Assembly: GCA_964035545.1 (NCBI GenBank)
Contig: OZ037773.1
Coordinates: forward strand, 835,751 to 899,750
DNA length: 64,000 nucleotides
Source of the DNA: Bugula neritina
Lineage: Eukaryota; Animalia; Bryozoa
Direction of reading: 5' to 3'
Program-made: the position numbers and the translations under genes
Notes under the pieces: model-generated
Databases searched by the model: none
Told to the model about the DNA's origin: nothing
What the model saw: the letters and a program-made list of their open reading frames with translations, nothing else
In this document: positions 3,050-55,788 of the stretch, in pieces
Position numbering within the stretch: position 1 is the first letter of the stretch
Layout of the letters: every line of letters starts with the position of its first letter

Positions 3050-3155
3050 TAATTATATACATGTTTACATGTTAGCCAACACATGACATATATGAGTAGA
3101 CAATATTGCTGTAGAGAGCTAATTGCAGATTGCAAATAACCTTTCTGCTTTTTGA

Positions 3156-15300: not shown

Positions 15301-18300
15301 CGTTGGAATAGAAACTGATTTAGGGCACTTAGAGGTCAATTCTGGGACATCATATAGCCCGACAGATGTCAGAGGTAAGTAACAACTTTACCTGTACCAA
15401 GTATGATACACAGTAAACTTATTAATCTTATCAGGTGTAACATAGAGCAGATTTATCTAAACCAAAAGTAGTAAATGCTATCTATACTCAATAAATATGT
15501 GTAATATTCTATAGAAAGAAAATCAATCCAAGTATCAATTATCCAGTGTTTGCCATTAATTGCTGGTCTCCTTTTCATTTGCAGGCCCTGTAGCTGTAGA
15601 CATCACTATCCCAAATGAGTTCTATCTTTATGGGACATCTACTTTCACATGTAATGCAACTGGATTCACTAATATCACTCAACTTCAACTGATAGAGGGT
15701 CACACCAATAGTGTTATGGCAGGATGTCGGCTAGGTCTTGGAGGAGCTGTCGGCCAATCACCCTCTCATATTCCTGGACTCAATGCTCAAGCAATCTCCG
15801 ATCATCAGTGTGCCAATATCTTCTCTGCTACTGGTTTTGCACTGTCCATAAGTGTAACTATCACTAATGACATGGTGGTGGGACCATTTTATTGCTATGC
15901 TCAAGTTCTCCCACCTAGATTCTTTTCCTCTTCCCTTATCTCAATTGCCCAGTTTAAAAGTGAGTTTACTTTTCTTTTATTATTCCTATGTATCACACAG
16001 ATTTTCATTAAATACTAAAAGCACTTTTTGAGTCAAAACAGATGGTTGAAAAGAAGTAATCAGGTCTGCAAATAGTAAAATGACAGAGAATGTAAAAATA
16101 TATCTGTAGCTCCACCTGACAAAGGCTATTTGTGCAACACGTATTATTTAAAAATATACTGATTGCGTCATAGCAGGGTCAGCATATGTTTTACATTATA
16201 ATTAACAAAAGATGGTGAATAAGAGATAAAAAAACTAATACTCTTATGTGTCGGGGCCAGGAAATATACTTTGATGAATACTGCTGCTAGATTTAAAACA
16301 AATATTAAGAATTTATAGACTTTAATGGCTTTTGTCACTTAGCCTTCTTTTGATTGGTCGCTAATAGCAGAATATGAGACTCTATCTTTTTCATTCACAT
16401 TATCCAATCACGTTTTATAACATGAAGAAACATAAAGTAAAAACTGAAAACTATTATCAAATTTCTATGACAAACTTGTACTTCAGTAAACTGTTATTGA
16501 ACTCTACTTTTATTGAACTATATACTCTTACTGTATCATACTTTTACTATGTAACTATTCTCTTACTATACCACGCTTTCACTGTAAAAGCTTAACTTTA
16601 CTAATTGACATGGACATAAAGTATACACAAACCATACATACTCACAAATCATGCACAGATTATATGGGGCATATATACAAAACATATATACTGTATATAT
16701 AATATCATGCGCATAATTACTTTCATGTCTAAAATGTGTTGGAAAATTCAGCAGAAAAAATCATGTTTTAGGTTAAGGTATACTTCTAATAACAATTCGA
16801 GTTGAAATCAATGCCAACACAGCGTCTTTCAATATAATGATTTTAAGAACCAAAAATCTATAATGTTGATATGTTGATATAGATATAAAACATCTGTTTT
16901 TTTCAGTGCCTGGGACCATAGATTTGATTACACCGTTCACATTGACTTATCCTTGGTATATTGGGAAAGCAGAATTTTTGAACTGCAATGCTATAAATTT
17001 TATTTCTCTGTCTCAACTATACCTAAAGTTTGAGAGCTCAAGTGGAGATGTTGTTTTAAGTGGCTGTAATGGAACCAGTTCTAATCACCAGGGAAATCCT
17101 AGTGGCTACGGAATTCCTGTTTTATCAGACAGTGAATGTGCAGGTGCTTTTAACCAACAGGGTTTCATTATCCAGTTCAATGTTATTGGAATGGCAAATA
17201 TGAGAAATGGTACCTTTACTTGCATTGGAGTAGAAACGGAACTCGGGTATCTCCAGGTCAACTCTTCAAATACTACAACAGAACTTAAAGGTTTGTTATC
17301 ACTCTGTGTACAGATTGAGCTACTTCCAAGGGCACCATTCCTGATATTATATTGCACCAGTTTTTTCTTGAAATGGTTTTTATTTCTAAAATCATATGAT
17401 GGTAGTTTTCATTTTGTTGAAGTGCTTTCATCATAACAAAGCTATGTTTTACTTGTCTGCATAGTTACTACATAATATTCAAATAAACTCTTTTCTGTAC
17501 TGCATTTTGAATTAGTAATTTTCATGCAGCTAATTATAATATTATTGTGTTGCAGTTGCTCCACAGTCAATTAATTTAACCATTTCTCCACCGGATGTCT
17601 ACGTTGGTCAGATATTCTCTTTCAACTGCTTTTCAACACCACCAGAAGCTAATTCTGTGTTCAATTACTGTAAGTTGCTCTACTATTTTACTTCAATCAT
17701 ATATATTTATGCGCATATTCAAGCAGATATTCTGAGTTTGCCTAGTGATTAAAGTAGGTAAATTTTAAAAGTAAATAATTACAAATATTGCAAGCTTATG
17801 TCACTCAAGCCATTGCAACTTAAAGACCACATAGAATACTCCCGCAAGTTCATAGTCACTATGTCTGTGAGATTCCTGATGGAAAACATTTTTGCTAAAT
17901 CAGGCCCAGAACTTATCCAAATGGTACACAGAAGCAATTATGACTGAATACTTTTTCTAACAACATCATTTTCCTTTGCTGGGTTTGAACTTATGACTTT
18001 GGGCTTTAGCCCCGTTAAACCACAGTTGCTTCTTAACTTAGACTACATAGTTTGTGGATCTGAGAACCTTTTGCTTATAATGAAATATTATTATTTTTAA
18101 TACCTTTACATTATCTGCTCTCTCTTTGCACTAGATGTGACTAGTTCTACTGGGACTCTGTTATCGGCATCCTCTTCTTACACTCCGACAGCACAAGACG
18201 TACCTTATATAGACATCACTTGTGAAGACACAGCTCACCCTTATGCTGTCAATGCTGCCGTAAATCGAACAGAACGTAAGTTAGTACTCTTCTTAATCTA

Positions 18301-21300
18301 GCTATAAGACCTGCCAATAGCTCTAGCTTTGTAGATTACCTGTAACTTGATTTAAAACTGTTTTATTCATGTCAGAATCTAGTACTAAGGCAGAAACAAA
18401 CCAAAACAGTAAACTACTCCAGATTTATTTACTTATTCAAAATATTAGACTAATTCATCAACAAATTTAATAAGAGGTGGAGGACATGGTGCGTCGCCCA
18501 AGAGGAAGTAACAGTGAGGCCCAACTTTTTGCTAAATTCTGGCGGCTGAGATTTTCATAAAAGCTGTTTAAATTTTAATATTATATTTTCTAATGTTTTT
18601 AGTCTAGCCAAAGAAGTTGTATATAACCTTAGATAGAATGAAAACAGGTCAAATATAAAAGCAATGATTGCTTACTACATGCTTTTAAACACAACAATGG
18701 TAATTACCAACATAATGAAAAATATTTTTATAGGACAGTAAATACCAAATTTATCATAGGTAGGATTTTTATGATTTAATATCTTAGAAAAATAGAAAGG
18801 GGCCGATCAGTGAGCAAACATGACGGTAACGAAACCAAAGATCTATAAAGTTTATATAATATGTTAGGTAGTTGTTATTAGCACATATTGCTTTTACATG
18901 ACTCTACAATTAATACATTAGGTATTTTGTTTAATTTAAGAAAGTCAATAAATGCTACATACATATTCCAAGATCACTAATTGTATAACTAAACTACATA
19001 ATAGAAATTTGCCTACTTTAGCAACATTTTGTAAAAATCTATTTTTACTTCGGTATAGACAAAGTGCATGCCACAAATTGGCAATAATCTTAAAACAGCA
19101 TGACTAGAGGTGAGAGATCAAACTCATACTGACGCTACATATTTTAGGCTTGATTATAATGACTACTACTACCACTAGTAGTACTACAACAACACTAGCA
19201 CCAGTCACTACAGCACCACCAGTCACTGCAGCACCACCAGTCACTACAGCACCACCAGTCACTGCAGCACCACCAGTCACTGCAGCACCACCAGCCACTA
19301 CAGCACCACAGGTCACTACAGCACCACCAGCCACTACAGCACCACCAGTCACTGCAGCACCACCAGTCACTACAGCACCACCAGTCACTGCAGCACCACC
19401 AGTCACTACAGCACCACCAGTCACTACAGCACCACCAGTCACTACAGCACCACCAATCACTGCAGCACCACCAGTCACTACAGCACCACCAATCACTGCA
19501 GCACCACCAATCACTGCAGCACCACCAGTCACTGCAGCACCACCAGTCACTACAGCACCACCAGTCACTACAGCACCACCAGTCACTGCAGCACCACCAG
19601 TCACTGCAGCACCACCAGTCACTACAGCACCACCAGTTACTATAGCACCACCAGTCACTACAGCACCACCAGTCACTGCAGCACCACCAGTCACTACAGC
19701 ACCACCAGTCACTACAGCACCAGCTCCGATCACTGCACCACCATCTTCAAACACTTCTACAATGAATAGTCAGTTTATTTAATATACATACAAGTTGCTT
19801 TTTATCATCGGTGAATGCTGTAAAATAACCAAAGTTTTATTTTTCCATCAGGGTTGTGAGCAAATAGGTCAATCAATAACCAGTTACAAACACTCTCCCC
19901 TGACTTATATAACACTCATTATATCAAGCTATGCTGTTCACAGGTAATTCTTCCTAGTTATCTAAACACATTTATCAGCTGTTGGTGTTATATTCTAGAT
20001 CCTGCAGTAACTCTTCACTCAAACACAGACACCTTCCCAGATTTCTATGTTGGACAATCAGTAACTTTCACTTGTCACGCTACTGGATTTGTCTCCCTTG
20101 AGCGAATGCACTTTGTATACAAAAATACATCTAATCCCTCATTTGTTGGTTGCAAAGATGGTAGCATTGATAACGCTAATGGTGTGACCACAATTGAAGG
20201 GCCAGACTCTCAGCACTGTCTGTCAACAGCCAATAATATTTCTGAATTTCAGTTCACAGCTACACTGAATATAACCGCAGATCTGGCTAATGATGAGTTT
20301 GATTGTGGAACATACGACAGAAACCTGAATATGGTGTTCAGATCCACTCCCATTTATGTTACTACTGTTAGAGGTTTGTGATGTGTCTGACCAGTTTCAT
20401 TATGTATACAGCAAACCTATATATTCTATAAATACGTGATTGTTGAAGTTCCTACTGATTATAACTAGCACAGTTTGGTCTTAGAGTTTCATTTAACCAG
20501 AAAACAAAAGTTTAAAATAAATACTCGTACCATTCCTTTAATTCCACTACTGTGCCTACAGCTTTACCAAAATATTGTCATCACAGTTTTTTGCATTTAC
20601 TGTTTTATACATTTCTAGTTCCTCCCATGTCCGAAGATGTTGATGTAGACATTCAACCGTGGCCTATAGTAGAGAATGCCCCATTTACCATCACGTGTTC
20701 AACTCCATCCAATAGCGTAGTGTATAATTACAGTACGTATAAAAACTAAGATATAAAAAAAAAGAATTTAGCTCAAGTTATTAGCATTTTTGAAAACACA
20801 AGCATATATCTGTATGCGTTTTTGTGAATTAAAGTAACTATAATATGAATGTTAAAATAGGTTTAAAATTGATATATGATTATTGAATAACTTTTTTAAT
20901 AACCTGTCATCAGTATAAAAAGTTAAATTAAAATGTAAATATTATAATATAATAATTAGGATAAAAATATCAGCTTTGTGTTTTGCTTGTTTAGGGATTG
21001 AGAGCAGAGATGGTCAGTTATTGAGTAACACCAGCACTTACACTCCTACAAGTAGTGACGTCTCAGGGATTAGAGTAAGCTGTACTGATCAGAATCATCC
21101 TAACTGGAGACCTCAAGCAAGAGCCCTTGTTATTGCAACTGTCTGTAAGTTTACAGGCTATCAAACTAAATTTTATGCTATCCAAAGCCAGTATAGTCTA
21201 ATTAAATAATATGATTCATAAATCAAACGCATGCATCCATATCGTCTTAAAAGATTTCATGCAAGTTGATAGTCGCTACCCCTGTGAGAAAGGTTTTTTT

Positions 21301-24300
21301 TGTTAAAGCAGGCCTTATTTAAATGAGGCACAGAAGCAACTTTGACTGGATGTTCTTCCAGACATCACCAATGGTCTTTGTCCAGGTTTAAACAAATGAC
21401 ATTGTGTTTACTAGGCTAACGCTCTAACTTCTAGACCACGACTGCTTCCTACATTCATATCATCTTATGATTAATCAAATTAATTTTTTAGCATATGGAA
21501 TACTTTCGCTCTCCCGGCTTTCTAACAACGAGTCTGTGTTCTACGTTCAAGTGCCAACTATTTTGACTTGCAATGCTGCCAACTTCACAAACCTTGGTCG
21601 CTTAGATTTGGTGTTCTACAACACATCATCCCAGGAGGTAGAGTTTAAAGGAGGGTGTACTATGGATGAATATGGTGTCTGGTCACCTAATAGAACCAGC
21701 TCTCTCTCTAATGATCTATACATTAGATCGAATACAGGAAACGGTTGTCTAATGGCTCATTCTGATTCGGCAGTCAACTTTACCATAACCCTGAGAAATC
21801 AGATATTGAAGGGCTATTTCTATTGTGAGGCTACAGACTTTGCCACTGGTGACACAGTGTATTCAAATAGCATTCATCCAACAATTATTATAGGTGCGTC
21901 GAGTAATATCTCTATAGTCTAGACTAAGCATAAGCGCTTAACGAACAACAAATCTTTTGATACTTCAACAAGAATTCCACACACATAAATTTGGTTCTAA
22001 TGCTTTCAAAGATAGCGCAAAGACTTACCATATAAAATGGACTTTTGTCTGTAAAACTAGAATAATTATGTGAAGTTTCTTTTTAAAATTTATTTAAAAA
22101 TGTCACACACAGTAGTAGTTGTCAGCAAAATTAAAACTTTACTGACAACTCTCATTTGTACAGTGTACAGTGGTATAAATTTGCTTTTAGTAAAATATAA
22201 TTTGCTAACAACAGCTTTGCAAAATTTATAGAATGAAAGACGTGCACTAATAAGAGTAAAAAGTTTAAATCAGTTATCAATTTTATTTATACACCAGCTA
22301 AAAAATAAGTGCAGAAGTAGTATGCTTTCAATGCTTCAAGGTCTTCAAGCATTCAAGGTTTAAAATTCTGACCGCATAAAACCTGCACCAAACAGCCCAG
22401 TTTTGTTGCAGTGAAAGGTTTTTGCTCTAACAGGCTTGCAATAGCTCAGGTCTTTTGACTTGAGACTTTTTGATAAAAAACACAGCAAGTATTTCAATAA
22501 TTTATTCAAGTATGTTTTTGCAGTGAATACATTATTAGGTACTTCTAAACAGTTTTTCACTGTTTTTCGGTTCCCTTTGTTGTTTTACATTGTAAAATGT
22601 ACTTTCCCATTTTGACAGACATTCAACGTTGTCAAAAATTTTTTTAGCTGATCTATGCTGGTAATGCAGAATTCTATATTTTTATTATCTTGATATTCAA
22701 TTATTGCAGAACCGACTATTTCTATCAATACAAGTTTGAATCTAAAAACTAACAGATATGTTGGAGAAGAAGTAGAATTTAGTTGCCATGCATCGGAGCT
22801 TCTTTCTCTCAATTCCGTGATCTTGGAATATAGAGAGCACAATTTCAACACATTTGTTGGATGTAAAAATGGTTACATTTATACTATCAACACCTCTAGC
22901 ATTACCCTACATGGGCCGGACAATCAAGATTGCCTGCCAACAAGCGACAATATCACAGAGTTCAATTTCACAGCAAAACTGAATGTTACTGCAGATTTGG
23001 TGAATGGGCGGTTTCAGTGTATTGGATATGACAGGGTTCACAGTCACCCTTTCTTCTCAAAAACAGTAGACTTCCACAGAATTGTTGGTTGGTCATAATA
23101 GATATATATGTATGCATGTAAACTTCTTTAAAGTTTTTTTTGTATTTTGCATTCCATGGGCTTTTTTAGGTAGCAGAATTTTTAGGTGTGGTAAAGGTAT
23201 TAGTTCAGGTTTATTCACAAAATTATGAACATCGACTTAGCTTTACTTGAGATATTGAAACTTATTTTGTTTATTCAGAACCTGAAGTGACTCAGATTTT
23301 GAGTAACCCTGAATTCTACCTAGATGAAGAGATCAATGTGACTTGTCAGGCTTCAGGGTTTCACACTTTACATGGTCTGATGTTAGTCTACAGAAATGCA
23401 ACCACCACTTTAGAAACTGGTTGTGTGGAAGGGGTTCAAGTACATGGAAATAAGACTGGTATACCAGACGCGGATTGTACAGATACATCAGCTGATCAAA
23501 GTCACTCAAGCTTTGTTGTAAGGTTCAAAGTTCACATGAACATGCTTAGTGCAACCCTGACCTGCCAAGCATTTGACAGCCATCTTGATCGACATGAGAG
23601 CAGCTTGATTACTATTATTGATCATATCAAAGGTTTGCAATAATTTAATTTACCAATGAAATGTGCAGCCTTTATCAAGGCTGTTTTAAAAATTAGCTGG
23701 CGAGTCTAGAACAAAAACCTAATATTAATGTTTTGATTACATTGATGAACTTATTTACAAAAAATCTTTAAATTTTTGAAAAATTAAACAGCAGTGATAT
23801 TGCAAAAGTTTCAGCCAAGAAGTAATAATGGCTTTATATTATGTACATGAGATATACTGTTGGTATAAATTGTGATAAAATTTATGACTCCAGGATGCTG
23901 TAAACCAAAACACACACAACAAGGTAGTAAGTAAAGTACCTACTTTACATTGCCCCATTGAACATTTCTCAATATTGTATTTTATAAACAGTAGCACTAT
24001 AACCCTGTTACCTGCAAAAATTAAAATGGTTATAGTGAGAAATTATAGTCTGTTTCTCTGTCTTATATAAAAAAAACATATTTTTGCTCAACTTGGTTAT
24101 TATTTAGAGTGACATTTTGAAGTGAGTTCAATATTGTGCAACCAGAAGATCTATGAAAATTACAAATCCTATAAATTCCAAAATCATTAGTAGCTTTAGT
24201 AACTGATCTTCTTAGATTTAGTCACCTAACCTAAAACCTATTTACCCAAAGTGGCGATAGTTGGTCATATCAGTAATTGGATGTAAATATGTTGTAGATC

Positions 24301-27300
24301 CTCCTGGGCCAATCAGTATGACTATTAATCCTTTTCCTATTGAAGAAGGTCAACCCTTTACGTTTGAGTGTGAATCAGATTCCAGTCCAAACTCTACTTT
24401 CTCCTATTGTAAGTGGCTCAATTTACTTAATCTAGTACACATCAGCAATTTATGACCAAAAATTCAAGGTTGTTCAAAATTAATGAAAATTTGCTATATG
24501 GGGTAACTTTATGTGCTGATTCTGAATATGCAAAGTAAAAAAGGCTAGAAGGGGGTTATGCAGCAGTAAAGCGCAACGTCGTCGTCATATGAGCGAAATT
24601 GCAGTTTATCTCAAATCACCATGCCTAACAATAAAGTTTGTTGAAATAACATTTTATTAGTTATTTCAGCATTAAAACTTAAGTCATGTTTGTTGATTAG
24701 CTAGAAGGGGGTCAACAGTCGTAATGACGCAACGTCATTACCTCTTAAAATAATTTAGCTGTCGTTATTATATTGCACATATTTTATCCTAAAGTTAAAC
24801 TTTTTATCTTGGGAAACTACTTCTACTGTTGGTGGGTGTGACTTTTTCAAAAAAATCTATGTGGAAACAGTTTTCTGTTATAACTGATGCTCAGTAATTG
24901 ATGCATCATCTGATAGAGTAGCTTGCCTGAACCTCACACTGCTTATATATTACTAGCGTATTAAAATTTAAGTGCCCAATTATGTAAGTTCATAAGTCAA
25001 CTGCAAATAAATAAATCAGAATGGTTTCTAACACTCATTTATTTTTGAAATAATAAAATACAAGCAACTTGTTTGCATAATTTCTTAGATTTTCAGTTTT
25101 TCAACTCTAGTATTGTGCCATTTCCCCACCACTCAATGAAGTAGACACTTGGTTCACCAGGAGTCCTATTATAACCACTAAACGAAACAATAAAACATAG
25201 TTATATACATACTATATACAAGTTATTATATACAATAAGTACACACATATATATATATACAAACTCCATCAGCCCTGCCCATGTAATTTAGAGACATTCC
25301 TGTAAAATAAATAGAAGCAGTTTAAATAAATGATTACATGCATTATGAACCAAACTGATTGATTTACAATGTTAATTTGCTCTAACTATAAAGATTAAAA
25401 GTGTAAGAGTAACTAACCCAAGCCTGGTCAAATTCAGCCCAGTACTCATCTGACTCCATGAAATCATCATGATCTGACTCTGTTTCAAAAACTTCAGGAT
25501 TTTTCCAAATAGTCTAAAATAAAAGAAAGCCAATTTTTTTGTATGTAAATTCAAGAATCTGAAAACTGCTTAGAATGGATATCTATGCCTATTATCTCAC
25601 GCCTCCATATTATCTCTATCTTGAACTTCAACCTGAGTCTTCTGAGTGTCATCTAGCTCACTTTCAGAGTCACTGAAGTCAACAGCTACCTAGAAAAATT
25701 AAATTTTTTCCATAGTTAAATGCAACCCTTAGATTAGGTGCAGTATTCATAGGCAATTTGTAAGTTCATTAACAGGAGAATAAATCAAATAAATTATTTT
25801 TCAGTCAAACAACAATTGTAAAGGAAGCAAGATCTTATAGTTACGAGACAAGTTTTTCAAACCGACAGGCATAGCTTCACACCTTGAACTCGATTCTTAG
25901 TCTGAGAGACAGCTGTTTAGATCTATTTTTAGTTTATCTGTTTAACTCAATTACTTATGTTTTAGCTGTACTCAGAGGAGATGTGACTATTACAGCCACT
26001 AACACTTACACTCCTGTGGTACTTGATAGACATAACTTACACATTATGTGTATTGATACATACCACATGCACTGGCAGGGAGGAAATACCTCTCTCACAA
26101 GACACATTTCAGCATATTGTAAGCCAACCCAACACTTATAATAGATGACATTTTGCAGTGTATAGTACACTACAAAGATGTTGATATATTGTATGTATTT
26201 AAAGACAGAAAAGTTTTATCAGCCAAGAAACAACTAAATATTTTGACATCAAACAAAAATCAGACTATAAATCATAAAAGCAAGTTTATAAATATAAAAA
26301 TGCTATCCTTTAGACTCTATAATAAACCTGTACACTTGAAAACAAATGTATTTGGAATAAATTACCAAACTCTTTCTTATATAGCTACATATGAATCTAC
26401 AGACGTGTCATTCGAGTTTAATTTATCGTGTTTTTTTAAAGCTCACATGATTGATATTCTAAACTGATCATATATTTGATTATATTTTTCTAGCTGATGC
26501 TGAAGTCAACATATCTTATGTATCCAATGGAGATCCAGCTTTCTACCTTAATGACACAACTACTCTAACTTGTTCAGCTTCAAGCTTTACTTATCTCCAT
26601 TCTATTCAGCTGCACTTTTCCGGCATGTCTAATAACTTTACGAGTAGATGTTCATACCATCATGGTGCCTGGCACGCTGAAAGTACCGTGACACAAATGG
26701 GAGAGTTTGATTTCTCTCCAGTTTTCACTGATAACCAATGTGAACACATAACCAACCACTCAAGTATGGTGAACATGGTTATCAGTGTAAAAAACAGTCT
26801 CAGTATAGAAAATGGTTCATTTGTTTGTTCAGCTCATGAGGGTCTTACAGGGGAACATCATGTAACTTCTTTGGCAATTCACTCATTACTTGGTAAGGAA
26901 TCAGTTATTAACCAAAAACACATTATTTTACTTTTGTGTAAAGTTGCTGTGTACGCATTGCATATGCAAATAGTGTCGTAATTTCAATGCTTCCATTTCT
27001 TGTTTCTAGTTCCTCCCATGTCTGAAGATGTGGATTTAATCATTGAGCCATGGCCTATAGTAGAGAATGCTCCATTCACAGTTACATGTTCAACTCCATC
27101 CAAGAGCGTAGCATTTGATTACAGTACGTGCTATCCCATTACTTATCTCTTGCCACTCTTGAAGCAGAGTTGCCACACAGACCTCGTAGCGCAGTTTTGA
27201 TTACCAGTAGTCTAAAAATTAGTTGTGTGCAGATTTCAAGCAAATTTCATACATGCAAAATGCTGAAGGACGAGTGCAGAAGGCTGGTGTAGAAATGCTC

Positions 27301-30077
27301 CAATTAGCTTCTCACCAATTAATAAGCAAATGCTTTGAGTTTCAATTTATGTTTATCATTTCTAGTGATTGGCTTATTCTCTCCTTATCTGCGTTTATAT
27401 CTATATCTGCATTAAAATAATCTTCAAAGCAAATGATGGTAGCAGTAAAGCTAAACACAAATATCATTAGCTAAAAAACTTGCGCACTACAGACAATGCA
27501 CTGTGTGTAATAGGTCATTCTCATAACAGATTTTCATACCCGTCTAATTTGCGACTTTATACGCTAAGCGGTGAAGTTGCGTTAAATTTAGTGTGCATAG
27601 ATATAAACATGCAATAACACACTTTAAGTATACTTAGCAGTTAGCTCTATGATTGTAATCAGACTACCTCAAATATAATTGCAGAATACTAATTGCTGTG
27701 TTCTGATGGGTTGATTCACGGCTATAGTTGGTGATGATTATTATCATTATCATTTTATTTGGATAAAATAATTCTGGGTAAAAAGTGTTTCATCCAAATA
27801 AAAAGCTGATTCTACAAATAATTATATCTTGTACCAGATTTTGAGTAACCCTGAGTTCTACCTAGATGAAGAGATTATTGTGATTTGTCAGGCTACAGGG
27901 TTTCACACTTTACATGGTCTGATGTTAGTCTACAGAAATGCAACCACCACTTTAGAAACTGGTTGTGTGGAAGATGTTTAAGTACATGGAAATATGACTG
28001 GTATATAATACTGTATTTAGAGTTGTAGTATTTGTAATTTTTTAGTGATAACAAATCAGAATGGCCAGAGTTTGAGCAGTAACAACACTTACACTCCTAC
28101 AAGTAGTGATGTCTCAGGAATTAGAGTAAGCTGTACTGATCAGAATCATCCTAACTGGAAACCTCATGCTAGAGTTCGAGTTGTTTCAACTACTTGTAAG
28201 TGTACAAATGATGACACGACATTTTAAAGATGACAGTAGGAAAACACTTATTAGGAAAACAGACAATTTACCAATAGAAAGCGCACAAATAGGCAATTAA
28301 AAAATGGCCATTTAAAAATATCATTTGAAAAATAAAAAAATATTCAACATGGACTAGTCTAAAGGGAGCATTCAGAATGTGGTTGAGTCCGAAATAGCTT
28401 TCAACAATAAATATGAAGCGTGAATTAGTTAGGCTTCTCGTGAAAGTAGAATTAGTTAACAAATATTTTCAATTTTAAATTGCACATGTTTACAAAAAGC
28501 TATTTTAGACCTGAACAGATGCTGAATGTTCCCTCTTGACTACTCCATGTTGAATTTTCTTCATTTTCCAACTGTTCTTTTCAAACGTCCATTTTCTGAT
28601 TGTCCATTTGCTAAGTGTCTATTTTCAAGTTGTCTATTAGTGAACCACCCGTTTTCCGAATAAGTGTTTTTGAATATTCATGAATTTGTACAAATAACTA
28701 GTCAGTTTATTAACTATCATCACCCAATTAGATTAAGTTAAACTTATTTGGGTGGGAAATTAAATTTCTATCAACTATTAATATACTTTTTCATTAGAAT
28801 TTTAGTAATTTTTTAATGAGTTATGTTATTGGCTCAGTAATTCTCAGGACATGCTGCTCTTTCATTTCTATTTGTATTTGAAACAATGATGTCACTAACT
28901 TATCTGAAAAGTATTTTTCTAATTTGTTTTGAATTTAGACAGGACATGTTGAAACATGGAACTATCAACTATATTCTAGTAAAGCAAAATGACATCTATA
29001 ACAACAGAAAATATATAATAACGCTAACAGATAAACCTTTCCTCATCACACACTGTTTCAATTCTTGTTCTGTCTTGTAATTTTAGCCAACGGAGTAATC
29101 CACATTTCTCACCACTCAGAATCACATCCTTACTTTTATGTCGGAATGGAGAACACAATTACCTGTTCAGCCAGTAACTTTACTAGTCTCAGTCAGTTGA
29201 ATCTAGTCTATGTTGATCAGTTAACCAGCTCTATTGTGTTCAACGCTGGCTGTGACATGGACGAACTTGGTGTCTGGTCCTCCAATAACACTGGACTTAT
29301 TGCGCTTAAACTGAATGTGCATTCAACTTCAGATAATGAATGTCAGTCAGGTGGTGAGCAGTTGATGGTTGATTTCACAGTAGAAGTCAAAACCCCTTAT
29401 CACGTTAACGGATATTTTTACTGCAAAGGCATTGAGAGTGCAACAAGTTCTGATATAGTCTCGGGGAATATTGAATTGAAAGATGTAAGAGGTGAGTATA
29501 TATTTAGTCAGTTTTATGTCTTATCGCTTCTCTTCAAATCTATAAGACCTATTAAAGTTTATTCTACAGAATCATTGCAAGATTAAATGGCATTTAAAAG
29601 TTATGTCTTGAGTACGAATATAAATTTTCAAAATGCTACTGTCCATTTTCTGTTTGCTTCAAAGCTGAAAAACTAAGTAAAGTAACTTGCTGATTATTTC
29701 AATTTTTTTGTCATATCTGTTTATAATTAGGATATTGTAGATAATTATGTTGTTTTGTACTTGCAGTGGCCCCAACAAGCCTGGTGATGTTTGTCGCTCC
29801 AGAACCTATTCAATATGTTAACCTGTCTGTTTCTTTCTCCTGTGAGACTCAGCCGCCAGAAGCTAAATCTGTCTTTATCTACGGTATACAAACATTATAT
29901 GACACCACACAAACATTTTATAACACCATACAAACATTATATGGCATAACACAAACATTATAGGACATCACACAAGCATTATATGATATAACACAAACAT
30001 TATATGGCACCACACAAACATTATATGACATAACACAAACATTATATGTATATGACATCACACAAGCTTGACATATA

Positions 30078-30159
<82 letters not shown>

Positions 30160-31241
30160 AAATAGTTGTAATTGCAGGTGTCTATGGTGGTGCAGGGACA
30201 AAGCTATCTTCTATCAATGCATACACACCAAGAAATACTGAATCCATAACTCTATATTGTATGGACACTACTCATCAGTTTTTGACTAACAACATGTACT
30301 TCAACGCTACCAGGATAATCTTTCCTTTAGGTGATTATGCTTTTTTTAATACAAAATATTCAGTATTGTCTAGATAAAGTTCTAAAGATGGTTTCAGACT
30401 GGTGTTTGCAAAAACACAATAAGTTACTTTTAATTTGCTAGTACTCTTGAAATACACATGCCACAAATTTTCAGACTAAAGACTACCAACATTTGATGTT
30501 TGCTGGTTTGTTTTTTCACATTACTTTAACATGCTAAGTTTGCAATCTTACAGCTTTTGTTTTTCTTTAGAGGCCCCATCAACAATTGCTCCACTAACCA
30601 CGGAGCTAATCACATTGCCACCACTTTCCAGAATCACACCTCCAGATAATAATAATTCAAGCTCTATGCTTACAAGTGGCACAACCACAACAGACATAAT
30701 CAAAGCCACTACCACAAAGACACTTAGTACCAGAACAGAAGAAGAGACAACAACACCAGATCTGGACTTCCCTGTTGAAGCAGACACACCGCAAGCAGAC
30801 GACAAGACTACCAATAAGTATACAGTTAAGTTTGTCACTTTCAAGGACGTTGACGATACACAAAAAGTCGTCAAAGTTGAACCTCCTCAAGGTGAGTAGA
30901 TTTTATTAAACTGGCCATTTTTCTCAATAACCATTGTCCTTGAAAATATTTTTTCAAAGCGATAATAATGTACCAGAAAAAGTAAAAACCCATTAAAGCT
31001 GAATGGCTTTTATTAAATTATGTATTTTTAACTTCCGATAGATTTTGTTGAGTCTTATATTTCCATCTATTTTATAGGTTATACTGCTGCCGCAAAAGCT
31101 GGTGTTGTGTTTGCTCTGATTGCCACTGGTCTGCTGCTCATTGTATCTCTCCTTCTGCTGACGAAGGTGGTGAAGGATCAACCGGTACCAAAGATTGACC
31201 CCAATATAGATTTTATTTACAACAAGCAGAGTGGTGCTTAG
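5813..31241 (+). CDS. Large multi-Ig-like type I membrane glycoprotein (signal peptide, probable beta-propeller, 10 long + 5 short Ig-like domains, mucin block, TM, short tail); 33 coding exons, about 2,457 aa
   Basis: Manually spliced exons, all GT-AG and phase-consistent: 5813-5874, 6105-6186, 6603-6702, 6826-7017, 7578-7687, 8586-8727, 8842-8914, 9070-9260, 9987-10106, 12654-12692, 13071-13448, 14985-15374, 15585-15959, 16907-17290, 17556-17669, 18135-18275, 19148-19768, 19999-20373, 20619-20732, 20995-21144, 21492-21893, 22710-23087, 23279-23632, 24298-24408, 25966-26118, 26494-26892, 27010-27123, 28046-28195, 29087-29491, 29767-29883, 30178-30330, 30571-30891, 31078-31241. The sum is 7374 nt, in frame. 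It starts MIFQNSKFTTAYIAVLILLMR and ends with TM AGVVFALIATGLLLIVSLLLL plus tail TKVVKDQPVPKIDPNIDFIYNKQSGA*. No transcript evidence is available. Confidence 0.85.
6105..10106 (+). CDS. N-terminal exons of the large gene: probable NHL-like beta-propeller region
   Basis: Spliced peptide has blade-like segments VIAGNSS, LRFIDGNSCARIL, GMTYDLVNSTWYFA, GISLSPSNLHLLIADYSTSQLFLLD. The fold assignment is inference from motif resemblance. Confidence 0.55.
7834..8039. mobile_element. hAT-type MITE
   Basis: Ends CAAGGGTAGGCAAC / GTTGCCCACCTCTA; flanking 8-mers TTATAGAA and TTATAGAG (7/8 match). Confidence 0.75.
8247..8562. repeat. 16-bp intronic minisatellite (TATACTAACACTACTA)n containing TACTAAC
   Basis: About 20 units, ending 23 nt before exon 8586. 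Confidence 0.95.
9578..9968. repeat. 19-bp intronic minisatellite (CTAGAGTATAGGCTTACAT)n
   Basis: About 20 units, with degenerate units upstream from about 9370; ends just before the acceptor of exon 9987. Confidence 0.95.
10594..12281 (-). mobile_element. 5'-truncated Penelope-like retroelement (RT + GIY-YIG endonuclease) inside a (TA)n tract in an intron of the large gene
   Basis: ORF 12246-10846 is uninterrupted: FDIVEFYPSI, MGSHDGAETCELVG, LYRDDGL (RT motifs), CNC..CPL, IVYQAK...TYIG...FKARYYNH (GIY-YIG); (TA)n on both sides (about 10518-10593 and 12282-12342). Confidence 0.95.
10688..10758 (-). ncRNA. Type I hammerhead ribozyme in the Penelope terminal repeat, core mutated (GAAA to AAAA)
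   Basis: Minus strand reads ATTTAT CTGACGA GTGCAC-N9-GTGTAC AAAA CTACTAG TA ATAAAT; differs from the intact copy at 48742-48812 at position 10714. Confidence 0.75.
13071..18275 (+). CDS. First Ig-like exon array of the large gene (long domains A-B-A'-B' plus one short domain split over two exons)
   Basis: ORF-track peptides 12995, 14873, 15560 and 16906 share Y-x-G-x(4-6)-C-x-[AS]-x2-F-x2-[LI]-x-QL, GC, C and G-x-F-x-C; every exon is symmetric phase 1. Confidence 0.85.
14252..14440 (-). mobile_element. tRNA-derived SINE
   Basis: Minus strand starts CGTGGTCTAGGGGTTAAAGCG (A box) ... GGTTCGAACCC (B box); related copies at 17852 and 21269. Confidence 0.8.
17852..18030 (-). mobile_element. tRNA-derived SINE, diverged copy
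   Basis: Colinear similarity to 14252-14440 (atagtc.ct...ctgtgaga, gcaattatgactg, gggtttgaac). Confidence 0.7.
19148..19768 (+). CDS. Mucin-like exon with (APPVTT/APPVTA)n, an 18-bp coding tandem repeat
   Basis: Open frame of about 30 GCACCACCAGTCACT(A/G)CA units; acceptor ttttag before 19148; probable donor GTCAGT at 19769; length 621 nt keeps phase 1. Confidence 0.85.
19999..30330 (+). CDS. Second Ig-like exon array of the large gene (6 long domains, 4 short two-exon domains)
   Basis: Long four-Cys exons at 19999, 21492, 22710, 23279, 26494 and 29087; short domains split as 20619/20995, 24298/25966, 27010/28046 and 29767/30178 (pattern P..F..C in the first half, YTP...C.D..H in the second). 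Confidence 0.85.
21269..21449 (-). mobile_element. tRNA-derived SINE, diverged copy
   Basis: Colinear similarity to 14252-14440 (atagtcgct, tttaaatgaggcacag, catcaccaatgg, ctagaccacg). Confidence 0.75.
27835..28005 (+). pseudogene. Intronic pseudo-exon: partial copy of Ig exon 23279-23632
   Basis: Closely matches 23293-23463, but CAA has become TAA at 27979-27981 and the 3' half of the domain is missing. Confidence 0.85.
28240..28670. mobile_element. Degenerate foldback/MITE with long inverted arms
   Basis: AAAACACTTATTAGGAAAAC ... ATTCAACATGGA ... AAATAGCTTT is mirrored by AAAGCTATTT ... TCCATGTTGAAT ... GTTTTCCGAATAAGTGTTTT. Confidence 0.65.
29886..30066. repeat. 21-bp minisatellite starting at a splice donor, followed by (TA)n at about 30081-30156
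   Basis: About 8 units of ACACAAACATTATATG(A/G)CA(C/T)N directly after the GT at 29884. Confidence 0.9.
30571..31241 (+). CDS. Ser/Thr-rich stalk exon (30571-30891) and TM plus cytoplasmic tail exon (31078-31241) of the large gene
   Basis: T-rich peptide in ORF 30531; last exon translates GYTAAAKAGVVFALIATGLLLIVSLLLLTKVVKDQPVPKIDPNIDFIYNKQSGA* with TAG at 31239-31241. Confidence 0.85.
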
Positions 31242-33001
31242 ATTTGGTTTCAAATGATGCATGTTATGAATAGATCCTTCATTGTATTAACAGATGTGTC
31301 TGCTTCGTAAAGAATTTCGAATTGAGTAATCACTAAGTTAGTTGTTGAACATGTAAATGTGCTTATATTATTTATTTTTACAAAGTTAGTAATTATGATT
31401 GACCTAATGTATTATAGACAACACAATTATAGTGAAGACTAGTTTTTAAGACAGCAGATAGACTGTTAACAATAAAATTTTCTGTAATAAAAACTGTTAA
31501 TTCATTTATCAAGATATTTTCTGTATGATCATGGTCAGAAGTTATTGATCTGTTTCTTTGTGTGAAATGGACGTCCATTTACGTCAACACGCAAGTGTCC
31601 TGCCTAAAGTGCACATGTCAGCATCTTCCTTAGAGTCCAGTTTAGCTCTGGTTATTGGGCAAGCTAGATAGAGTTTTTTGTTTAAACAGCTGATGTAGAA
31701 CAAATAAAAACTAGTAAGTTCATTAGTATTATATATAATTTGCCAAACTTCTGCATGGGCTTTACAAGAAATAAAACAGTAGAAAAGTTGAGAAATGAAA
31801 AACTTGATTACGTACTACTATTGTTCTACCAACTAAAATGTTGCAAATAAGCTAAAACTCACTCATTACCCCTTAATGATTCACATATTTACATGTGAAT
31901 AAACAGAATTTTCTATTATTTCCTATATTACTTTTAATTACTAAAGCATTACCAGTCAGTATGAAAGTTAGTACTTTTGCAGGTCATGTCTAGAAATTAG
32001 AGTTTTGTTATAGGTGACTTATATTTTGGGTTTACTCAGATTATAGGAAACTATACAGGAAATGAGCCTTAGCAAACTGCATTACACAAACTCAACAGAC
32101 AACTTGGGATTGACAACTTGGAACACAGCATCCCAGAAATCCTGATACTTAACTTGAAAATTTAACAGAGAACTTGACCGATAACTTGACTCACCGTTTG
32201 ACACATTACTGATCAACTGCTTACAGAACTTACTATAATCTTCAAATACGTGATCAAGTAAAGCCATATTCAAACTCGTGCTAATATTGTGGTGGCTCGA
32301 TAGACTGCTATCGTAATAGAAAAGGGGAAAGCAATAATTATTTTCTAACTGTAAGATGGGGTCATTGCGTGTGTAGAAAGATGACCCGAGACAACAAACC
32401 CTCCAATAGGAATCGTCAATTATTATTAGGACTGTGGCTTCCCCGTAGTAAAACAGTTGTTAGTAGACAGGCAAACTAGAAACACTGTACTGTATTGTTG
32501 TAGAATATCTGAGTAGATGTAGAGTTTTATTTGCGTACGTATTTGTGTAAATATACTTCTTTATTATTTGAAACTACAGTTGTGAGATTGATTGGATTAC
32601 AAGCAATGCACTAATTTGATTATACACTGAAACCCACAAGAGTAAAATTATAACAATATGACCTGTGAGATAAGTTATGAAATAAAGACAGTCGCAGAGT
32701 CATGTCCAAACCAAGTGGCAGATAGCTGCCTCCACAGGAACACTTAACTTGATAAAGACTACAGCTTCAGCATTATGATAAAACTAATTTTGTATTATAG
32801 AATTACTATTTACTATACGTGTAGTTTAATTTCACTGTAGGGTATTCTCTTTAATCAAGTAAAACAAAACAAAATATATTTTATAGATATTTATGTTTTA
32901 TTTAAGTTTTAATGATGGCAACAATAGAATATTCAATAATTTAAAAATTTGACAAAGCGTTTAACTTAGAGCTCCGAACAGCTTCAGAACCAACAAACTT
33001 T

Positions 33002-34805
33002 TCAAGCCACATTCTTGTTGTAAATAAAATCGATATTAGGATCAATTTTGGGTCGTTCTTGGCTAATCCACAACTTGGTGAAGAGAGCCACGGACAAGAT
33101 TAGCATTATTCCTATGACTACCAGCAAGTAAATACTGGCAACCTTCAGAGAGTTCACTTTATCTGCAAAACAGCAGAGAAATGAACTTTATAATAATTGT
33201 TAGAAACAGTGCCGTCCATAAAAACTGGAGGTTTGCTTGTAATATTTTAAAACTATACTGATTTTATTTCAAATTGATTAACATAGCTTTCAAAAGAAAA
33301 AATGATCCGTTTTGTCAGAGTTGTAGGCAATAGGTGTCATAATACCATGAAATTTACACTAAGTAGAGTGTATTGCATCAAGTTATTTGAAGTCAGTTTA
33401 CTACCTTAATGCAGTCAGGTACGTGACTTACAAATACTAACCAACATTACAATGTCTGTATACTTTGTCAATGTCTTTCTACACAAAGAGAAGCTAGGAA
33501 ATATATGAAGGGAACTCATATAAAATCATTTTTTATACTAAGCTTAGTTTTATTTCCCGTGTTATCAAGTGAAGATTATTGATGCTGTAAGACTTTATAC
33601 AAACACCAAAGCACCAACGTGAAAAGTACTGCTGTCTTGATATTTACTTTTGCTACAACTTGTTTCGACAGCTGCTCGTTTATCAAAAATTTGAGAATGT
33701 GAACAGTGTCCATAATACCTGGAAAGTTGCCACTTGTTATTGCTGTGTCCTGTTTAGGCGTTGGTTGCCCTGTGTATGCAGCATTAGTTGGTCTTCGAGT
33801 AAGGAGGATAGTCACTAGAGGAGTTGTGGTGGATACAGTGCGTGCTTGAGTAGGTGCTTGAGTAGGTGCTTGAGTTGGTGCTTGAGTTGGTGCTTGAGTA
33901 GGTGCTTGAGTAGGTGCTTGAGTAGGTGCTTGAGTTGGTGCTTGAGTTGGTGCTTGGGTTGGTGCTTGAGTAGGTGCTTGAGTAGGTGCTTGAGTTGGTG
34001 CTTGAGTTGGTGCTTGAGTAGGTGCTTGAGTAGGTGCTTGAGTAGGTGCTTGAGTTGGTGCTTGAGTTGGTGCTTGGGTTGGTGCTTGAGTAGGTGCTTG
34101 AGTAGGTGCTTGAGTTGGTGCTTGAGTTGGTGCTTGAGTAGGTGCTTGAGTAGGTGCTTGAGTAGGTGCTTGAGTTGGTGGTTGAGTTGGTGCTTGAGTA
34201 GGTGCTTGAGTAGGTGCTTGAGTAGGTGCTTGAGTTGGTGCTTGAGTTGGTGCTTGAGTTGGTGCTTGAGTTGGTGCTTGAGTTGGTGCTTGAGTGACTG
34301 GCATCGTAGTGGTTGGCATCGTAGTGGCTGACATCGTAGTGGTTGACATCGTAGTTGCTGACATCGTAGTGGCTGACATCGTAGTAGTTGGCATCGTAGT
34401 GGCTGACATCGTAGTGGTTGGCATTGTAGTGTTTGGCATCGTAGTGGCTGACATCGTAGTGGTTGGCATTGTAGTGGTTGGCATCGTAGTGGCTGACATT
34501 GTAGTGGCTGACATCGTAGTGGTTGGCGTTGTAGTGGTTGGCATCGTGGTGGTTGGCATCGTAGTGGTTGGCATCGTGGTATTTGGCATCGTAGTGGTTG
34601 GCATCGTAGTGGTTGGCATCGTAGTGGTTGGCGTTACAGTAGTTGAAGTTGAAAGTGTGGTTTGTGCAAACCTAACAAATTGATACAAAAAATGGTTTCA
34701 TACCAAAACTTGACTAGCCACAGAAACAGGAATTTTATGGTGGGTATTACATCAAAGAACTTACACAAAATTGGTCAGGAATAAGAGGGTAGCACTACGC
34801 CACAT
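33002..34805 (-). CDS. Small type I membrane mucin (signal peptide, TTTMP/ATTMS and PTQA repeats, TM, tail); 3 exons, about 384 aa
   Basis: Exons 34805-34765 (MWRSATLLFLTNFV, donor GTAAGT, phase 2), 34671-33719 (repeats, phase 1) and 33162-33002 (DKVNSLKVASIYLLVVIGIMLILSVALFTKLWISQERPKIDPNIDFIYNKNVA*); 1155 nt in frame. Confidence 0.88.
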
Positions 34806-35998
34806 CCAACAACTTCTTCCCTTTGTCATTTTGTCAAACTCGACTAGTTTACTTGAGTGACTGCAGTTTGAGAAATTAAAACAGTTTCACAGAGTGTTGT
34901 GCCTTCAATGTAAATATTCTACATATCATTGAACATATTTTTTCTCTCACATTCAAATTAATAACTTTTAGCAGACATCAAAAATAAAACTGGAGCTTTC
35001 AGTGATTAGGCTGCGTGTTGCAGTGGATAATAATGGTCAACAATAATTTCTGTTAGTTTTATGATACGGCAGACTTCATAGCTGCGACTGAAAACATCAA
35101 GTGATCAGAAATCCCAAATTAAATCAACACTTGTTTCTACAAAATTATTTGTAAAAAATAATAAGTTTGAGTGTACAACCCTCAGTCTGTAGATGATAGC
35201 TAAGATATGTGAACATTTAATTACTGCGTAAATGACAAGAGTCAGGAATCTTTCAAACCAAGAAAATATATAAAAATCTGGTGAAACAGAAAATTGGTGC
35301 AAGAAAACAAACTGATTTCTAAACAACTTACACAATGCTGAAGAGCAACTGTAAGCACAGGTTTCTCCTATATTATCATTCAATAGAGTAAGTGTGAAGT
35401 TCCATAAGACATCACATTAGCTAGCAAATTTCTTAGCATTTCTAACAAATGATTGCAACAATGGCCACCTTGAACTATGTTTCATTGTTTGAAATATTTA
35501 TAATTTCATAATATAAAATAATATGGTTTTACACAAAAATTAATTCAATTGTACATTCTATGAGAATAAAATAATAGAAAATGCTACATTTTATAGTTTA
35601 TAGTTGATATGAAAAAGTGAATTTTATCATTTTATATATTCATATAAAACTTAAGACAATTGTTCATAAAATTATAACAAATTTATTATGAAAAATTGCA
35701 TAGTAATAGCAAGATTGAAATGTGGAAATGGTATAATTTGATAGAAAAAGTCTATTATCAAAAGTGTGCATTCCAAAATCCTTAATTCACTTGTAACCTG
35801 TTATGAAAAGCACACATTTATTAAATGAGATGAAATACACAGCACAGCATACACAGTGTATAGTAGCGCATGATTAATAGAGGTAATATATAGTGTGTAC
35901 ATATAGTAGTACAACTGGAAACAACTTTATATAAAACATTTACATATTTATCTTGAACTGAGCCTGTAGGAAACTTCAAGTCATGTGAACACATAATC

Positions 35999-52675: not shown

Positions 52676-52926
52676 TCGTGAGATTCAGGCTAATGAATAG
52701 TTGATCGAGAACACACTCGCTATGGCAGATTATTTAAAATCTAAGTCGACGTGTGTTCCCACCACTGTGTTTCATTATCGAATCTCCAGCTCGCTAACTG
52801 GCGTAGCTAGAGCTGACTGATGTAGTCTAGTTCCCGTACCAACAACATAACTAACTCACCCTTCGATCCAGAATAGTAAGACATTTTGGAATGAGAGCGG
52901 TAAATGATTAATGTTTAGTGGCACGT

Positions 52927-55753: not shown

Positions 55754-55788
55754 GACTGTTATACGCTAGATCCCACCGCTGCCACCAC

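Follow-up and report, generated by a model that had tools for sequence, protein, structure and literature searches.

Our findings support a model in which one phase-1 exon, encoding a transmembrane (TM) helix and a short tail, would be common to type-I membrane proteins with unrelated ectodomains, the carriers being two chains of V-like immunoglobulin (Ig) domains and a mucin in Bugula neritina, and proteins with FN3-like-looking partner domains in other species. The core of the tail, D-x-N-I-D-F-[I/V/M]-Y-N-K, appears to be a genuine cytoplasmic linear motif that is restricted by lineage, maintained by selection and apparently undescribed, and to the whole reading, a shared TM+tail exon carrying a docking motif for one conserved cytosolic partner, we give a probability of about 0.6. 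The window, that is the whole 64,000-nucleotide stretch of B. neritina DNA that was analysed, holds two of the carriers as convergent genes, a giant Ig-like gene and a small mucin gene, whose 3' portions are arranged as follows (positions are those of the window).

31078 to 31241, plus strand: terminal exon of the giant Ig-like gene, acceptor AG at 31076-31077
31188 to 31226, plus strand: motif PKIDPNIDFIYNK, core D-P-N-I-D-F-I-Y-N-K, in the giant gene tail
31242 to 33001, between the strands: 1.76-kb spacer separating the stops of the convergent genes, presumably both 3' UTRs
33002 to 33162, minus strand: terminal exon of the mucin gene, acceptor AG at 33163-33164
33014 to 33052, minus strand: motif PKIDPNIDFIYNK in the mucin gene tail

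From a phase-1 start, the giant gene exon encodes a TM helix of 19-20 residues, a tail of 26 residues and the stop TAG (31239-31241), with AATAAA signals following at about 31474 and 31491; the mucin gene exon, also with a phase-1 start, encodes a TM helix (mean Kyte-Doolittle hydropathy 2.78), a 24-residue tail and the stop TGA (33002-33004). The predicted C-terminal ends are ...PKIDPNIDFIYNKQSGA and ...PKIDPNIDFIYNKNVA, respectively, the direct translation of 31080-31241 (plus strand) being YTAAAKAGVVFALIATGLLLIVSLLLLTKVVKDQPVPKIDPNIDFIYNKQSGA up to its stop and that of 33005-33166 (minus strand) ...KVASIYLLVVIGIMLILSVALFTKLWISQERPKIDPNIDFIYNKNVA. Over the 13 motif codons (39 nt) the two genes show five synonymous differences (giant/mucin: CCA/CCC, AAG/AAA, GAC/GAT, CCC/CCT, ATA/ATC) and no replacement, a recount that returned the same five sites as the sequence-only reading had listed for its identical 13-mer. 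The equal distance from the membrane claimed there also holds, with nine residues between the conserved post-helix TK and PK in both tails.

The family had been taken to comprise two members; three were found. The third, 25 kb upstream of the window, is a paralogue of the giant gene in inverted, head-to-head orientation, with the C-terminus ...VTIDSNIDFIYNKRSRKS; its version of the motif is VTIDSNIDFIYNK, and the motif is thus not strictly invariant, contrary to what had been stated. Across all members the ten-residue core is invariant at all but two positions, within a fuller consensus [P]-[KR]-[IV]-D-x-N-I-D-F-[IVM]-Y-N-K, and it begins 10-13 residues past the best 19-residue hydrophobic window in seven of seven tails (hydropathy), the tails of TM+tail exon carriers being 24-35 residues long. 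Recurrence of the motif is not due to chance, because the degenerate pattern D-x-N-I-D-F-[IV]-Y-N-K gives three sites genome-wide, all in this cluster, against none for the reversed-pattern control. The 216-Mb genome holds three copies of the tail exon in all, within about 60 kb; the family is small, with three genes here, and lineage-restricted. A genome-wide search found the tail exons to be homologous (E 1e-8), which upholds part of the proposed paralogous receptor family; kinship between mucin and giants is nonetheless limited to the TM+tail exon, and exon sharing rather than whole-gene paralogy is therefore the relationship. The acceptor is phase 1 in every tail exon, a uniformity that would fit a portable module.

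Upstream of its terminal exon, the giant gene was modelled with the following features.

12656 to 30340, plus strand: ectodomain exons
12656-12693, plus strand: possible short Thr-rich exon
13073-13450, 14984-15376, 15581-15961, 16906-17292 and 19998-20375, plus strand: large Ig exons 1-5
19199 to 19722, plus strand: internal mucin-like repeat, 18-nt unit x29, TTAPPV-type sequence
21494-21895, 22709-23089, 23278-23634, 26496-26894 and 29089-29493, plus strand: large Ig exons 6-10
30571 to 30891, plus strand: penultimate 'stalk' exon, Thr-rich, with KYTVKFVTF; phase-1 end CAA G/gtgagt

Ten large exons each encode a V-like domain with four Cys, and five smaller Ig-like domains are each split over two exons, so that the two giants are predicted to be chains of about 15 Ig domains and roughly 2,100 aa each; the earlier figure of about 2,400 aa for the ectodomain is too high, the exon tally lying nearer 2,100 aa. 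The multi-Ig label stands by predicted fold but not by Pfam, which gave the large domains no hit and whose Ig families gave no match at E <= 1 for the ten domain exons. An AlphaFold2 model of a large domain is all-beta (mean pLDDT 87.7, pTM 0.82) and has 61 Foldseek matches in the PDB at E <= 1e-3, the best being Ig V domains and nanobodies (TM-score 0.6-0.73); the large domains share four invariant Cys, including those at the LTC and F-x-C positions, and led to Ig clusters in an Atlas feature search. By its modelled fold, a beta-sandwich with a B-F strand Cys pair, the ectodomain belongs to the immunoglobulin superfamily. The large Ig-like domain family is clustered in the B. neritina genome and has at least 91 exon matches there.

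The mucin gene is more compact.

34765 to 34829, minus strand: exon 1, ATG at 34829, phase-2 donor GT/gtaagt at 34765
33719 to 34671, minus strand: exon 2, 317 codons, phase-1 end CCA G/gtatt
34299-34632, minus strand: [M/T]PTTT repeat in exon 2, 15-nt unit x22
33842-34295, minus strand: TQAP repeat in exon 2, 12-nt unit x38

Exon 1 encodes the signal-peptide-like MTKGRSCWMWRSATLLFLTNF(V), with a hydrophobic core (hydropathy), and the predicted protein is 392 aa long; signal peptide, Ser/Thr/Pro-rich tandem repeats and C-terminal TM helix together make it a predicted mucin-type type-I membrane protein. Of the intron phases proposed earlier, those recovered were phase 2 after the mucin signal-peptide exon (donor at 34765) and phase 1 before a single TM+tail exon in both genes (donors at 30891 and 33719, with phase-1 acceptors); the phase-2 intron of the giant gene stays putative. 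It could be argued that such models are wrong, the TM+tail exon(s) coming from other transcripts or being relics and the tail-sharing mucin not being a real protein: the exon joins are predictions from genomic sequence, tandem repeats open in several frames partly account for the length of the mucin ORF, and a 5' end or signal-peptide exon of the giant gene was looked for and not located. Yet donor and acceptor phases agree in all three genes (predicted exon models), the mucin exon is open in the same frame at its ends, outside the repeats, a start codon and signal-like exon precede mucin exon 2, and a relic exon would not hold zero replacement changes against saturated synonymous sites. We consider wrong models highly improbable.

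Between giant and mucin, synonymous sites of the motif are saturated (5 of 6.7 differ, pS 0.75) and replacement sites unchanged (0 of 32, pN 0), whereas the stretch of that exon ahead of the motif, in the same paralogue comparison, has a pN of 0.50, in keeping with the divergence of the flanks noted before. Against a contig of a sister taxon (L020; dS about 0.2, the one contig for that taxon) the tail exon shows eight synonymous and no replacement changes, which together with the paralogue comparison bears out the purifying selection on the tyrosine motif that had been proposed. The stalk exon is much looser (13 synonymous and 15 replacement changes against L020, dN/dS about 0.34); with this one contig, relaxed constraint or diversification is suggested, no more.

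Identity of the motif might in principle be a neutral, functionless leftover of recent exon duplication or of conversion between neighbours, as the carrier genes adjoin and the two giant genes have elsewhere patchy stretches of 92-97% identity, introns included. The paralogous tail exons, on the other hand, are only 69-75% identical in DNA, and this difference shows that gene conversion is not what keeps the motif. Synonymous saturation, divergence over the remainder of the exon and retention of the core across species contradict the neutral account as well, and it keeps next to no probability.

The cross-species evidence consists of a TM helix and tail with the same core on contigs apparently from at least four other species. 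Carriers P0004, P0005, P0006 and L046 are short contigs with TM+tail ORFs, and these ORFs were searched for in the present genome and are absent from it; in the other species the core is retained while synonymous sites are saturated. Together with the sister taxon, these contigs extend conservation of the motif beyond this genome. In three of the other-species contigs the exon upstream of the tail looks FN3-like, with an Atlas score of 0.89, below that tool's evidence threshold and a lead only.

The motif probably faces the cytoplasm, because a signal peptide, ectodomains that are Cys- and N-glycosylation-rich or mucin-like, and basic residues past the helix all indicate that topology. Seven tails were compared with known cytoplasmic signals. 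No match was returned by the regular expressions for ITIM ([S/I/V/L]-x-Y-x-x-[I/L/V]; the tails have Phe at -2 and Q, N, R, P or F at +3), ITAM (two Yxx[L/I] units 6-12 residues apart; each of the three B. neritina tails has a single Tyr), ITSM, pYxN, NPxY (N-P-x-[Y/F]), acidic dileucine ([DE]xxxL[LI]) or FIGQY (F[IV]G[QA]Y), and YxxPhi is absent as a conserved signal (Y-N-K-[Q/N/R/P/N/F/P], with Phe at +3 in P0006 alone). The earlier placement of the tail outside ITIM, ITAM, NPxY and YxxPhi thus stands; the sole generic class present in all tails is the looser N..[YF] (NIDF). Searches of Pfam and the PDB matched the tail to no characterised family, a search for its peptide strings in the searchable literature gave no match, and a library of 1.84 billion proteins lacks the motif apart from unannotated ORF fragments found in this analysis. 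Of the three observations that the sequence-only reading had named as refuting it, two, absence of the motif from orthologues and a match to an already characterised tail, were thus looked for and not found.

One family deserved closer comparison. The tail could be a diverged relative of the TM+tail of ATP6AP2, the (pro)renin receptor (Renin_r, PF07850), and hence a V-ATPase-associated anchor: the mucin tail has a weak Renin_r match (E 0.12), and ATP6AP2 also has a C-terminal TM helix followed by a short DPxxD..IY tail, the genome's own copy reading ...MDPGNDSIIYRM..., a loose likeness (DPxxD.IY). However, the match reaches 12.9 bits against a Pfam gathering cut-off of 27.8 and occurs in one of six tails, hhalign gives a probability of 0.56% over seven columns, the PDB profile search returned no ATP6AP2 chain, the distance from membrane to motif is about 3 residues there and about 12 here, and a canonical ATP6AP2 gene is already present elsewhere in the genome. 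The resemblance is not significant at the sequence level (Pfam, hhalign, PDB), and we give the relationship almost no credence.

The motif would presumably serve in docking or sorting, including adaptor binding. By docking a single conserved partner in the cytosol, it would provide all carriers with the same intracellular connection, be it membrane anchoring, sorting or signal relay. Of the specific mechanisms the likeliest, if somewhat short of an even chance, is that the peptide, with its N-I-D-F (NxxF/Y), could be bound as an extended strand and turn by a membrane-lying PTB- or FERM-F3-type domain, and that the invariant Tyr, flanked by residues that Src favours (D at -3, I/V/M at -1), could act as a phospho-switch. 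The NPxY/NxxY-F motifs read by such domains in the LDLR family, beta-integrins and P-selectin are likewise short juxtamembrane Asn-x-x-aromatic peptides with a Tyr nearby, kept across carriers with different ectodomains and sensitive to position relative to the membrane. Nevertheless NxxF fits loosely; the present motif lacks the Pro after Asn and has Asp where a hydrophobic residue is usual, two before Asn, and its invariant block is longer (10 residues), running beyond the aromatic (I-Y-N-K). The FIGQY ankyrin-binding motif of the L1CAM family, whose members are Ig/FN3 adhesion molecules, likewise has N-x-D ahead of an F-I-...-Y core, and its Tyr is a phospho-switch for a cytoskeletal adaptor; yet alignment to the present motif needs three gaps, and between FIGQY and the membrane lie ~80 residues of a ~110-residue tail, versus a tail of ~25 residues here.

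Rather unlikely, in our judgement, is a phosphotyrosine module like ITIM/ITAM, in which a Src-type kinase and an SH2 effector acting on pY-N-K would serve an immune or allorecognition receptor cluster through a lineage-specific code. The invariant Tyr, with its -1 and -3 residues, speaks for it, as do ectodomains drawn from a large clustered V-like Ig family; ITIM/ITAM paired receptors (KIR, LILR, Siglecs) similarly combine a gene cluster, a shared Tyr tail motif and divergent or truncated ectodomains, although with consensus motifs that are all absent here. SH2 specificity is normally set by residues +1 to +5, but past the Tyr only N-K (+1 and +2) is conserved, +3 being free, and the invariant residues mostly lie N-terminal to it, seven such positions preceding the Tyr. 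An analogous case is offered by the Hydractinia Alr genes of the allorecognition complex, clustered atypical IgSF genes with ITAM and ITIM tails (Huene et al. 2022, PMC9546547). These too encode type-I membrane proteins, again in a marine invertebrate that forms colonies. Each domain has its own exon, the Ig domains are missed by Pfam and V-like by predicted structure only, and the proteins have a TM helix as well as a stalk or FN3-like spacer; the tails are short, contain Tyr and fall into groups common to paralogues (PMC9546547). They differ in having 1-3 Ig domains, versus about 15 here, and canonical ITAM/ITIM tails, where the present motif fits neither; the likeness is one of architecture, and sequence kinship is not claimed.

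In the shared-exon reading, the mucin might act as decoy, spacer or co-receptor. A broader proposal, distinctly unlikely as a whole, would see here a novel receptor-tail code of a lophotrochozoan (probably bryozoan) lineage, carried on a shuffle-able phase-1 exon, with clustered, fast-evolving V-like Ig receptors for self/non-self or immune recognition and the mucin as a tail-sharing partner or adaptor competitor; if true, its role would be comparable to that of ITIM or NPxY.

ITIM, ITAM, NPxY and FIGQY are short cytoplasmic motifs that plug unrelated surface receptors into a common intracellular machine, and to our knowledge almost all such cases are from vertebrates or from one of a few model invertebrates. 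The motif described here is common to multi-Ig, mucin and probably FN3 proteins in several species, and in B. neritina it marks three genes within a large cluster of atypical V-like Ig receptors, with adhesion, immunity and colony recognition as candidate roles. In an animal group that has received little study, its 13-residue peptide would, as a bait, offer a concrete handle on an adaptor pathway.

Two convergent genes in this AT-rich animal DNA (about 33% GC, GT-AG introns), one with a giant ectodomain and one with a mucin stalk, each end in an exon that encodes a transmembrane (TM) helix and a short tail.

Features of the giant and mucin genes in the window
19199-19722, TTAPPV mucin array internal to the giant gene
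31078 to stop codon 31239-31241, + strand, giant gene terminal exon (TM and tail), acceptor AG at 31076-31077, hydrophobic helix and tail TKVVKDQPVPKIDPNIDFIYNKQSGA
34829-34765, - strand, mucin gene exon 1, with ATG, signal-like MTKGRSCWMWRSATLLFLTNF and a phase-2 donor
34671-33719, - strand, mucin gene exon 2, with 38 TQAP units and 22 [M/T]PTTT units
33162-33002, - strand, mucin gene terminal exon (TM and tail), helix and tail TKLWISQERPKIDPNIDFIYNKNVA

The sequence-only reading had described a 13-residue tail motif shared by the two genes and differing only synonymously, and the 39-nt stretches indeed carry exactly five differences, all at third codon positions and none of them replacing a residue; the gap from T-K to P-K is nine residues in both tails. 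Likewise borne out were the phase-2 intron by the mucin signal peptide, at the donor of exon 1, and the phase-1 intron ahead of each TM and tail exon: both exons start in phase 1, fitting the donors of the giant stalk exon (CAA G/gtgagt at 30891) and of the mucin repeat exon (CCA G/gtatt at 33719). The mucin gene is thereby readable as a predicted three-exon gene of 392 aa; for the giant gene a signal-peptide exon was looked for and not found, and an Rfam scan of the window gave no match. That these predicted gene models are wrong is, with such agreement of phases, quite improbable.

The family had been taken to have two members, and a degenerate KIDPNIDFIY pattern (up to two mismatches) returned the giant and mucin sites only from the 216-Mb genome. 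Genome-wide protein searches with either tail exon, on the other hand, found a third copy at C9:810194-810343(-) (C9 being the same contig in genome-wide coordinates), 25.4 kb ahead of the window start, where the gene terminates in TKMVKERPVVTIDSNIDFIYNKRSRKS and a stop; its tail exon acceptor is likewise phase 1, and its stalk exon donor is CGA G/gtaag. The looser pattern D-x-N-I-D-F-[IV]-Y-N-K matches exactly these three sites in the whole genome, against none for a reversed-pattern control, so that the count rises to three; the identity of the tail motif is evidently not due to chance. The third gene is a paralogue of the giant gene, inverted and head-to-head with it, and has the domain exons in mirror order across about 24 kb. 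The two giants are mosaics: one 2-kb stretch is 92% identical, introns included, others reach 93-97%, and window segments 19206-21200, 25758-26896 and 29057-29292 are 87-97% identical to their matches in C9:810-835 kb (L011-L013), again introns included, whereas the N-terminal domain exons, stalk and tail exon are just 30-70% identical. This patchwork points to gene conversion in patches or recent segmental exchange. No shared first exons of the two giants were detected by blastn or tblastx of the 14-kb spacer between them. Several open frames in that spacer (6760-10190, +), with repeat-like motifs such as ...LRFIDGNS... and ...LLIADYSTSQLFLLDV..., may be part of another gene, and a 466-aa ORF between the giants (10846-12246, -), without a Pfam match and with its C-terminal part again at 50241-50564 (-), seems to belong to a repeat element of no known class. 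Upstream of the giant gene, the spacer also contains two tandem satellite arrays (3119-3451 and 3634-4014), and (TA)n-type microsatellites are common across the whole window. In a block at 52000-64000, with 53-57% GC in an otherwise about 33% GC window, ORFs match RT_RNaseH (E 5e-32; 60156-60707, +) and, at 54806-55657 (-), a Gag-type zinc knuckle; the block appears to hold GC-rich copies of LTR-type retroelements.

In the giant gene, ten large exons can be aligned as a single domain of about 128 residues with four invariant Cys. Pfam gave no significant match to these exons, but an AlphaFold2 model from the ten-row alignment (pLDDT 87.7, all-beta) matched Ig V domains and nanobodies in Foldseek (61 matches at E <= 1e-3, top TM-scores 0.6-0.73); thus, the "multi-Ig" description of this gene is right at the fold level and fails at the level of sequence profiles. 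Five more, smaller Ig-like domains take two exons apiece, and a rough exon tally gives about 2,100 aa rather than the 2,400 or so first proposed for the ectodomain. At least 91 exon matches to the 4-Cys V-like domain occur across the genome, mostly clustered along the first 4.2 Mb of C9 (e.g. 3.07-3.25 Mb and 4.13-4.20 Mb) and also on C1, C2 and C4, and represent a large receptor expansion specific to this lineage; within it, the NIDFIYNK tail is confined to the two giants. At 27802-27978 (+), inside a giant-gene intron, lies a truncated first-half copy of domain exon 23278-23634 (89% aa identity over 57 residues) with a stop at its end, probably a pseudo-exon. The nearest analogue of the cluster in overall design, by analogy only and with no polymorphism or allorecognition role in the likeness, is Hydractinia Alr, a clustered set of type-I proteins from a colonial invertebrate, with one domain per exon, V-like Ig domains missed by Pfam and recognised by structure prediction, and Tyr-motif tails (PMC9546547). 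Alr tails, however, carry canonical ITAM/ITIM (PMC9546547), and the tail described here fits neither. Overall, the TM and tail exon behaves as a portable unit, carried by proteins with apparently unrelated ectodomains, and the tail is most likely cytoplasmic, given the signal-like exon of the mucin gene, the mucin and Cys- and N-glycosylation-rich ectodomains and the basic residues past the helix.

A profile built from the three tails was searched against 1.84 billion proteins, followed by a word-indexed search and a metagenome pattern scan. Matches from other species were solely short ORFs on anonymous eukaryote-like contigs, each with a TM helix and then the core; neither protein library searched held an annotated full-length protein bearing the tail.

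Tail ends from other species
P0004, ...EDKPKIDPNIDFVYNKPRKSTVP and stop, from SRR31252243
P0005, ...HPKPKVDKNIDFIYNKNFTT... and stop, from five ENA assemblies and four more metagenome contigs
P0006, ...SGKPRIDPNIDFIYNKFAKE and stop, from SRR25569782
L046, ...NEPRIDPNIDFMYNKPRSS... and stop, from ERZ1740066

P0004 and P0005 are absent from this genome, as is any fourth copy of the core, and the tail-bearing contigs have 36-50% GC against 33% here, so these contigs come from other organisms. Homology of the tail exons and their conservation beyond this species are both upheld. Across members the core keeps D, N, I, D, F, Y, N and K invariant, starting 10-13 residues past the best 19-residue hydrophobic window in 7/7 tails, and a phase-1 acceptor stands directly ahead of the helix in every member. 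In L014, L015 and L046 the upstream exon resembles the end of an FN3 domain; Pfam gave no support for FN3 in these exons and an Atlas feature search scored it 0.89, under that search's own evidence line, and an FN3-like domain there is a lead. Rejected as members were P0002 and P0003, low-complexity or repeat matches of the profile search, and P0007, L037-L040 and L044, where the 10-mer lies in ORFs with no TM helix preceding (three in contigs of 23-24% or 40% GC) and is taken as chance. Two of these, L040 (Ga0210057_1070496) and P0007/L047, are metagenome ORFs of 263 and 48 aa that carry DPNIDFIYN(K). The ENA label BRYA16-1, to judge from the label alone, probably refers to the metagenomes from plastic debris studied by Bryant et al. 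2016, where bryozoans account for 30-90% of eukaryotic SSU rRNA reads (PMC5069773); the lineage carrying the tail may be bryozoan.

The purifying selection proposed for the motif is well sustained. Between giant and mucin genes, its 13 codons show synonymous differences at 5 of 6.7 sites and replacement differences at 0 of 32.3, against a pN of 0.50 in the 36 codons preceding it within the same exon. Compared with a sister-taxon contig (L020; runs SRR4020080 and SRR4020084; overall divergence about 9%, dS about 0.2), the 53-codon tail exon has eight synonymous and no replacement changes, and the neighbouring stalk exon 13 and 15, respectively (dN/dS about 0.34). Synonymous change without replacement therefore places the constraint on the peptide and not on the DNA: a tail block of 10-13 residues is held at peptide level, at a fixed spacing from the bilayer, and this constraint does not stem from the gene conversion apparent in other parts of the giants. 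Neutral duplication, by which the copies would resemble one another through descent alone, is accordingly very improbable.

The claim that the motif matches no characterised tail also stands. Regular expressions excluded ITIM, ITSM, ITAM, NPxY, conserved YxxPhi, acidic dileucine, FIGQY, pYxN, C-terminal PDZ and KKxx signals, and the peptide strings retrieved one unrelated hit and nothing relevant from the searchable full-text literature. Among known kinds of motif, NPxY/NxxY-F and FIGQY come closest, but this motif fails their defining patterns; N-x-x-[Y/F] (NIDF) is the sole generic class found in every tail. Pfam gave no significant match to the tails, the weak one being Renin_r to a single tail (E 0.12), which would suggest kinship with ATP6AP2, whose own orthologue in this genome has the tail ...MDPGNDSIIYRM... 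We reject that kinship, a faint prospect at best, because hhalign gives it a probability of 0.56% and a PDB profile search returned no ATP6AP2 chain, only a generic TM-helix match (PDGFR-beta TM peptide, E 0.17).

It is plausible to hypothesize that the tail block is a docking peptide for a single conserved cytosolic protein, whose membrane-apposed PTB or FERM-F3-like domain would bind NIDF as a strand plus turn, while the Tyr, with Asp at -3 and I/V/M at -1, would serve as a phospho-switch. We favour this NxxF-type recognition, at roughly 35-40%, since the invariant residues lie mainly ahead of the Tyr and the membrane spacing is fixed. Its main rival, a tail that serves purely as a pTyr-SH2 signalling code, is rather unlikely; wrong gene models, neutral duplication and ATP6AP2 kinship are less likely than either. 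The initial reading is supported in part, and the motif is best regarded as a putative receptor-tail linear motif, small in scope, yet a clean case that is directly testable with the peptide as bait.
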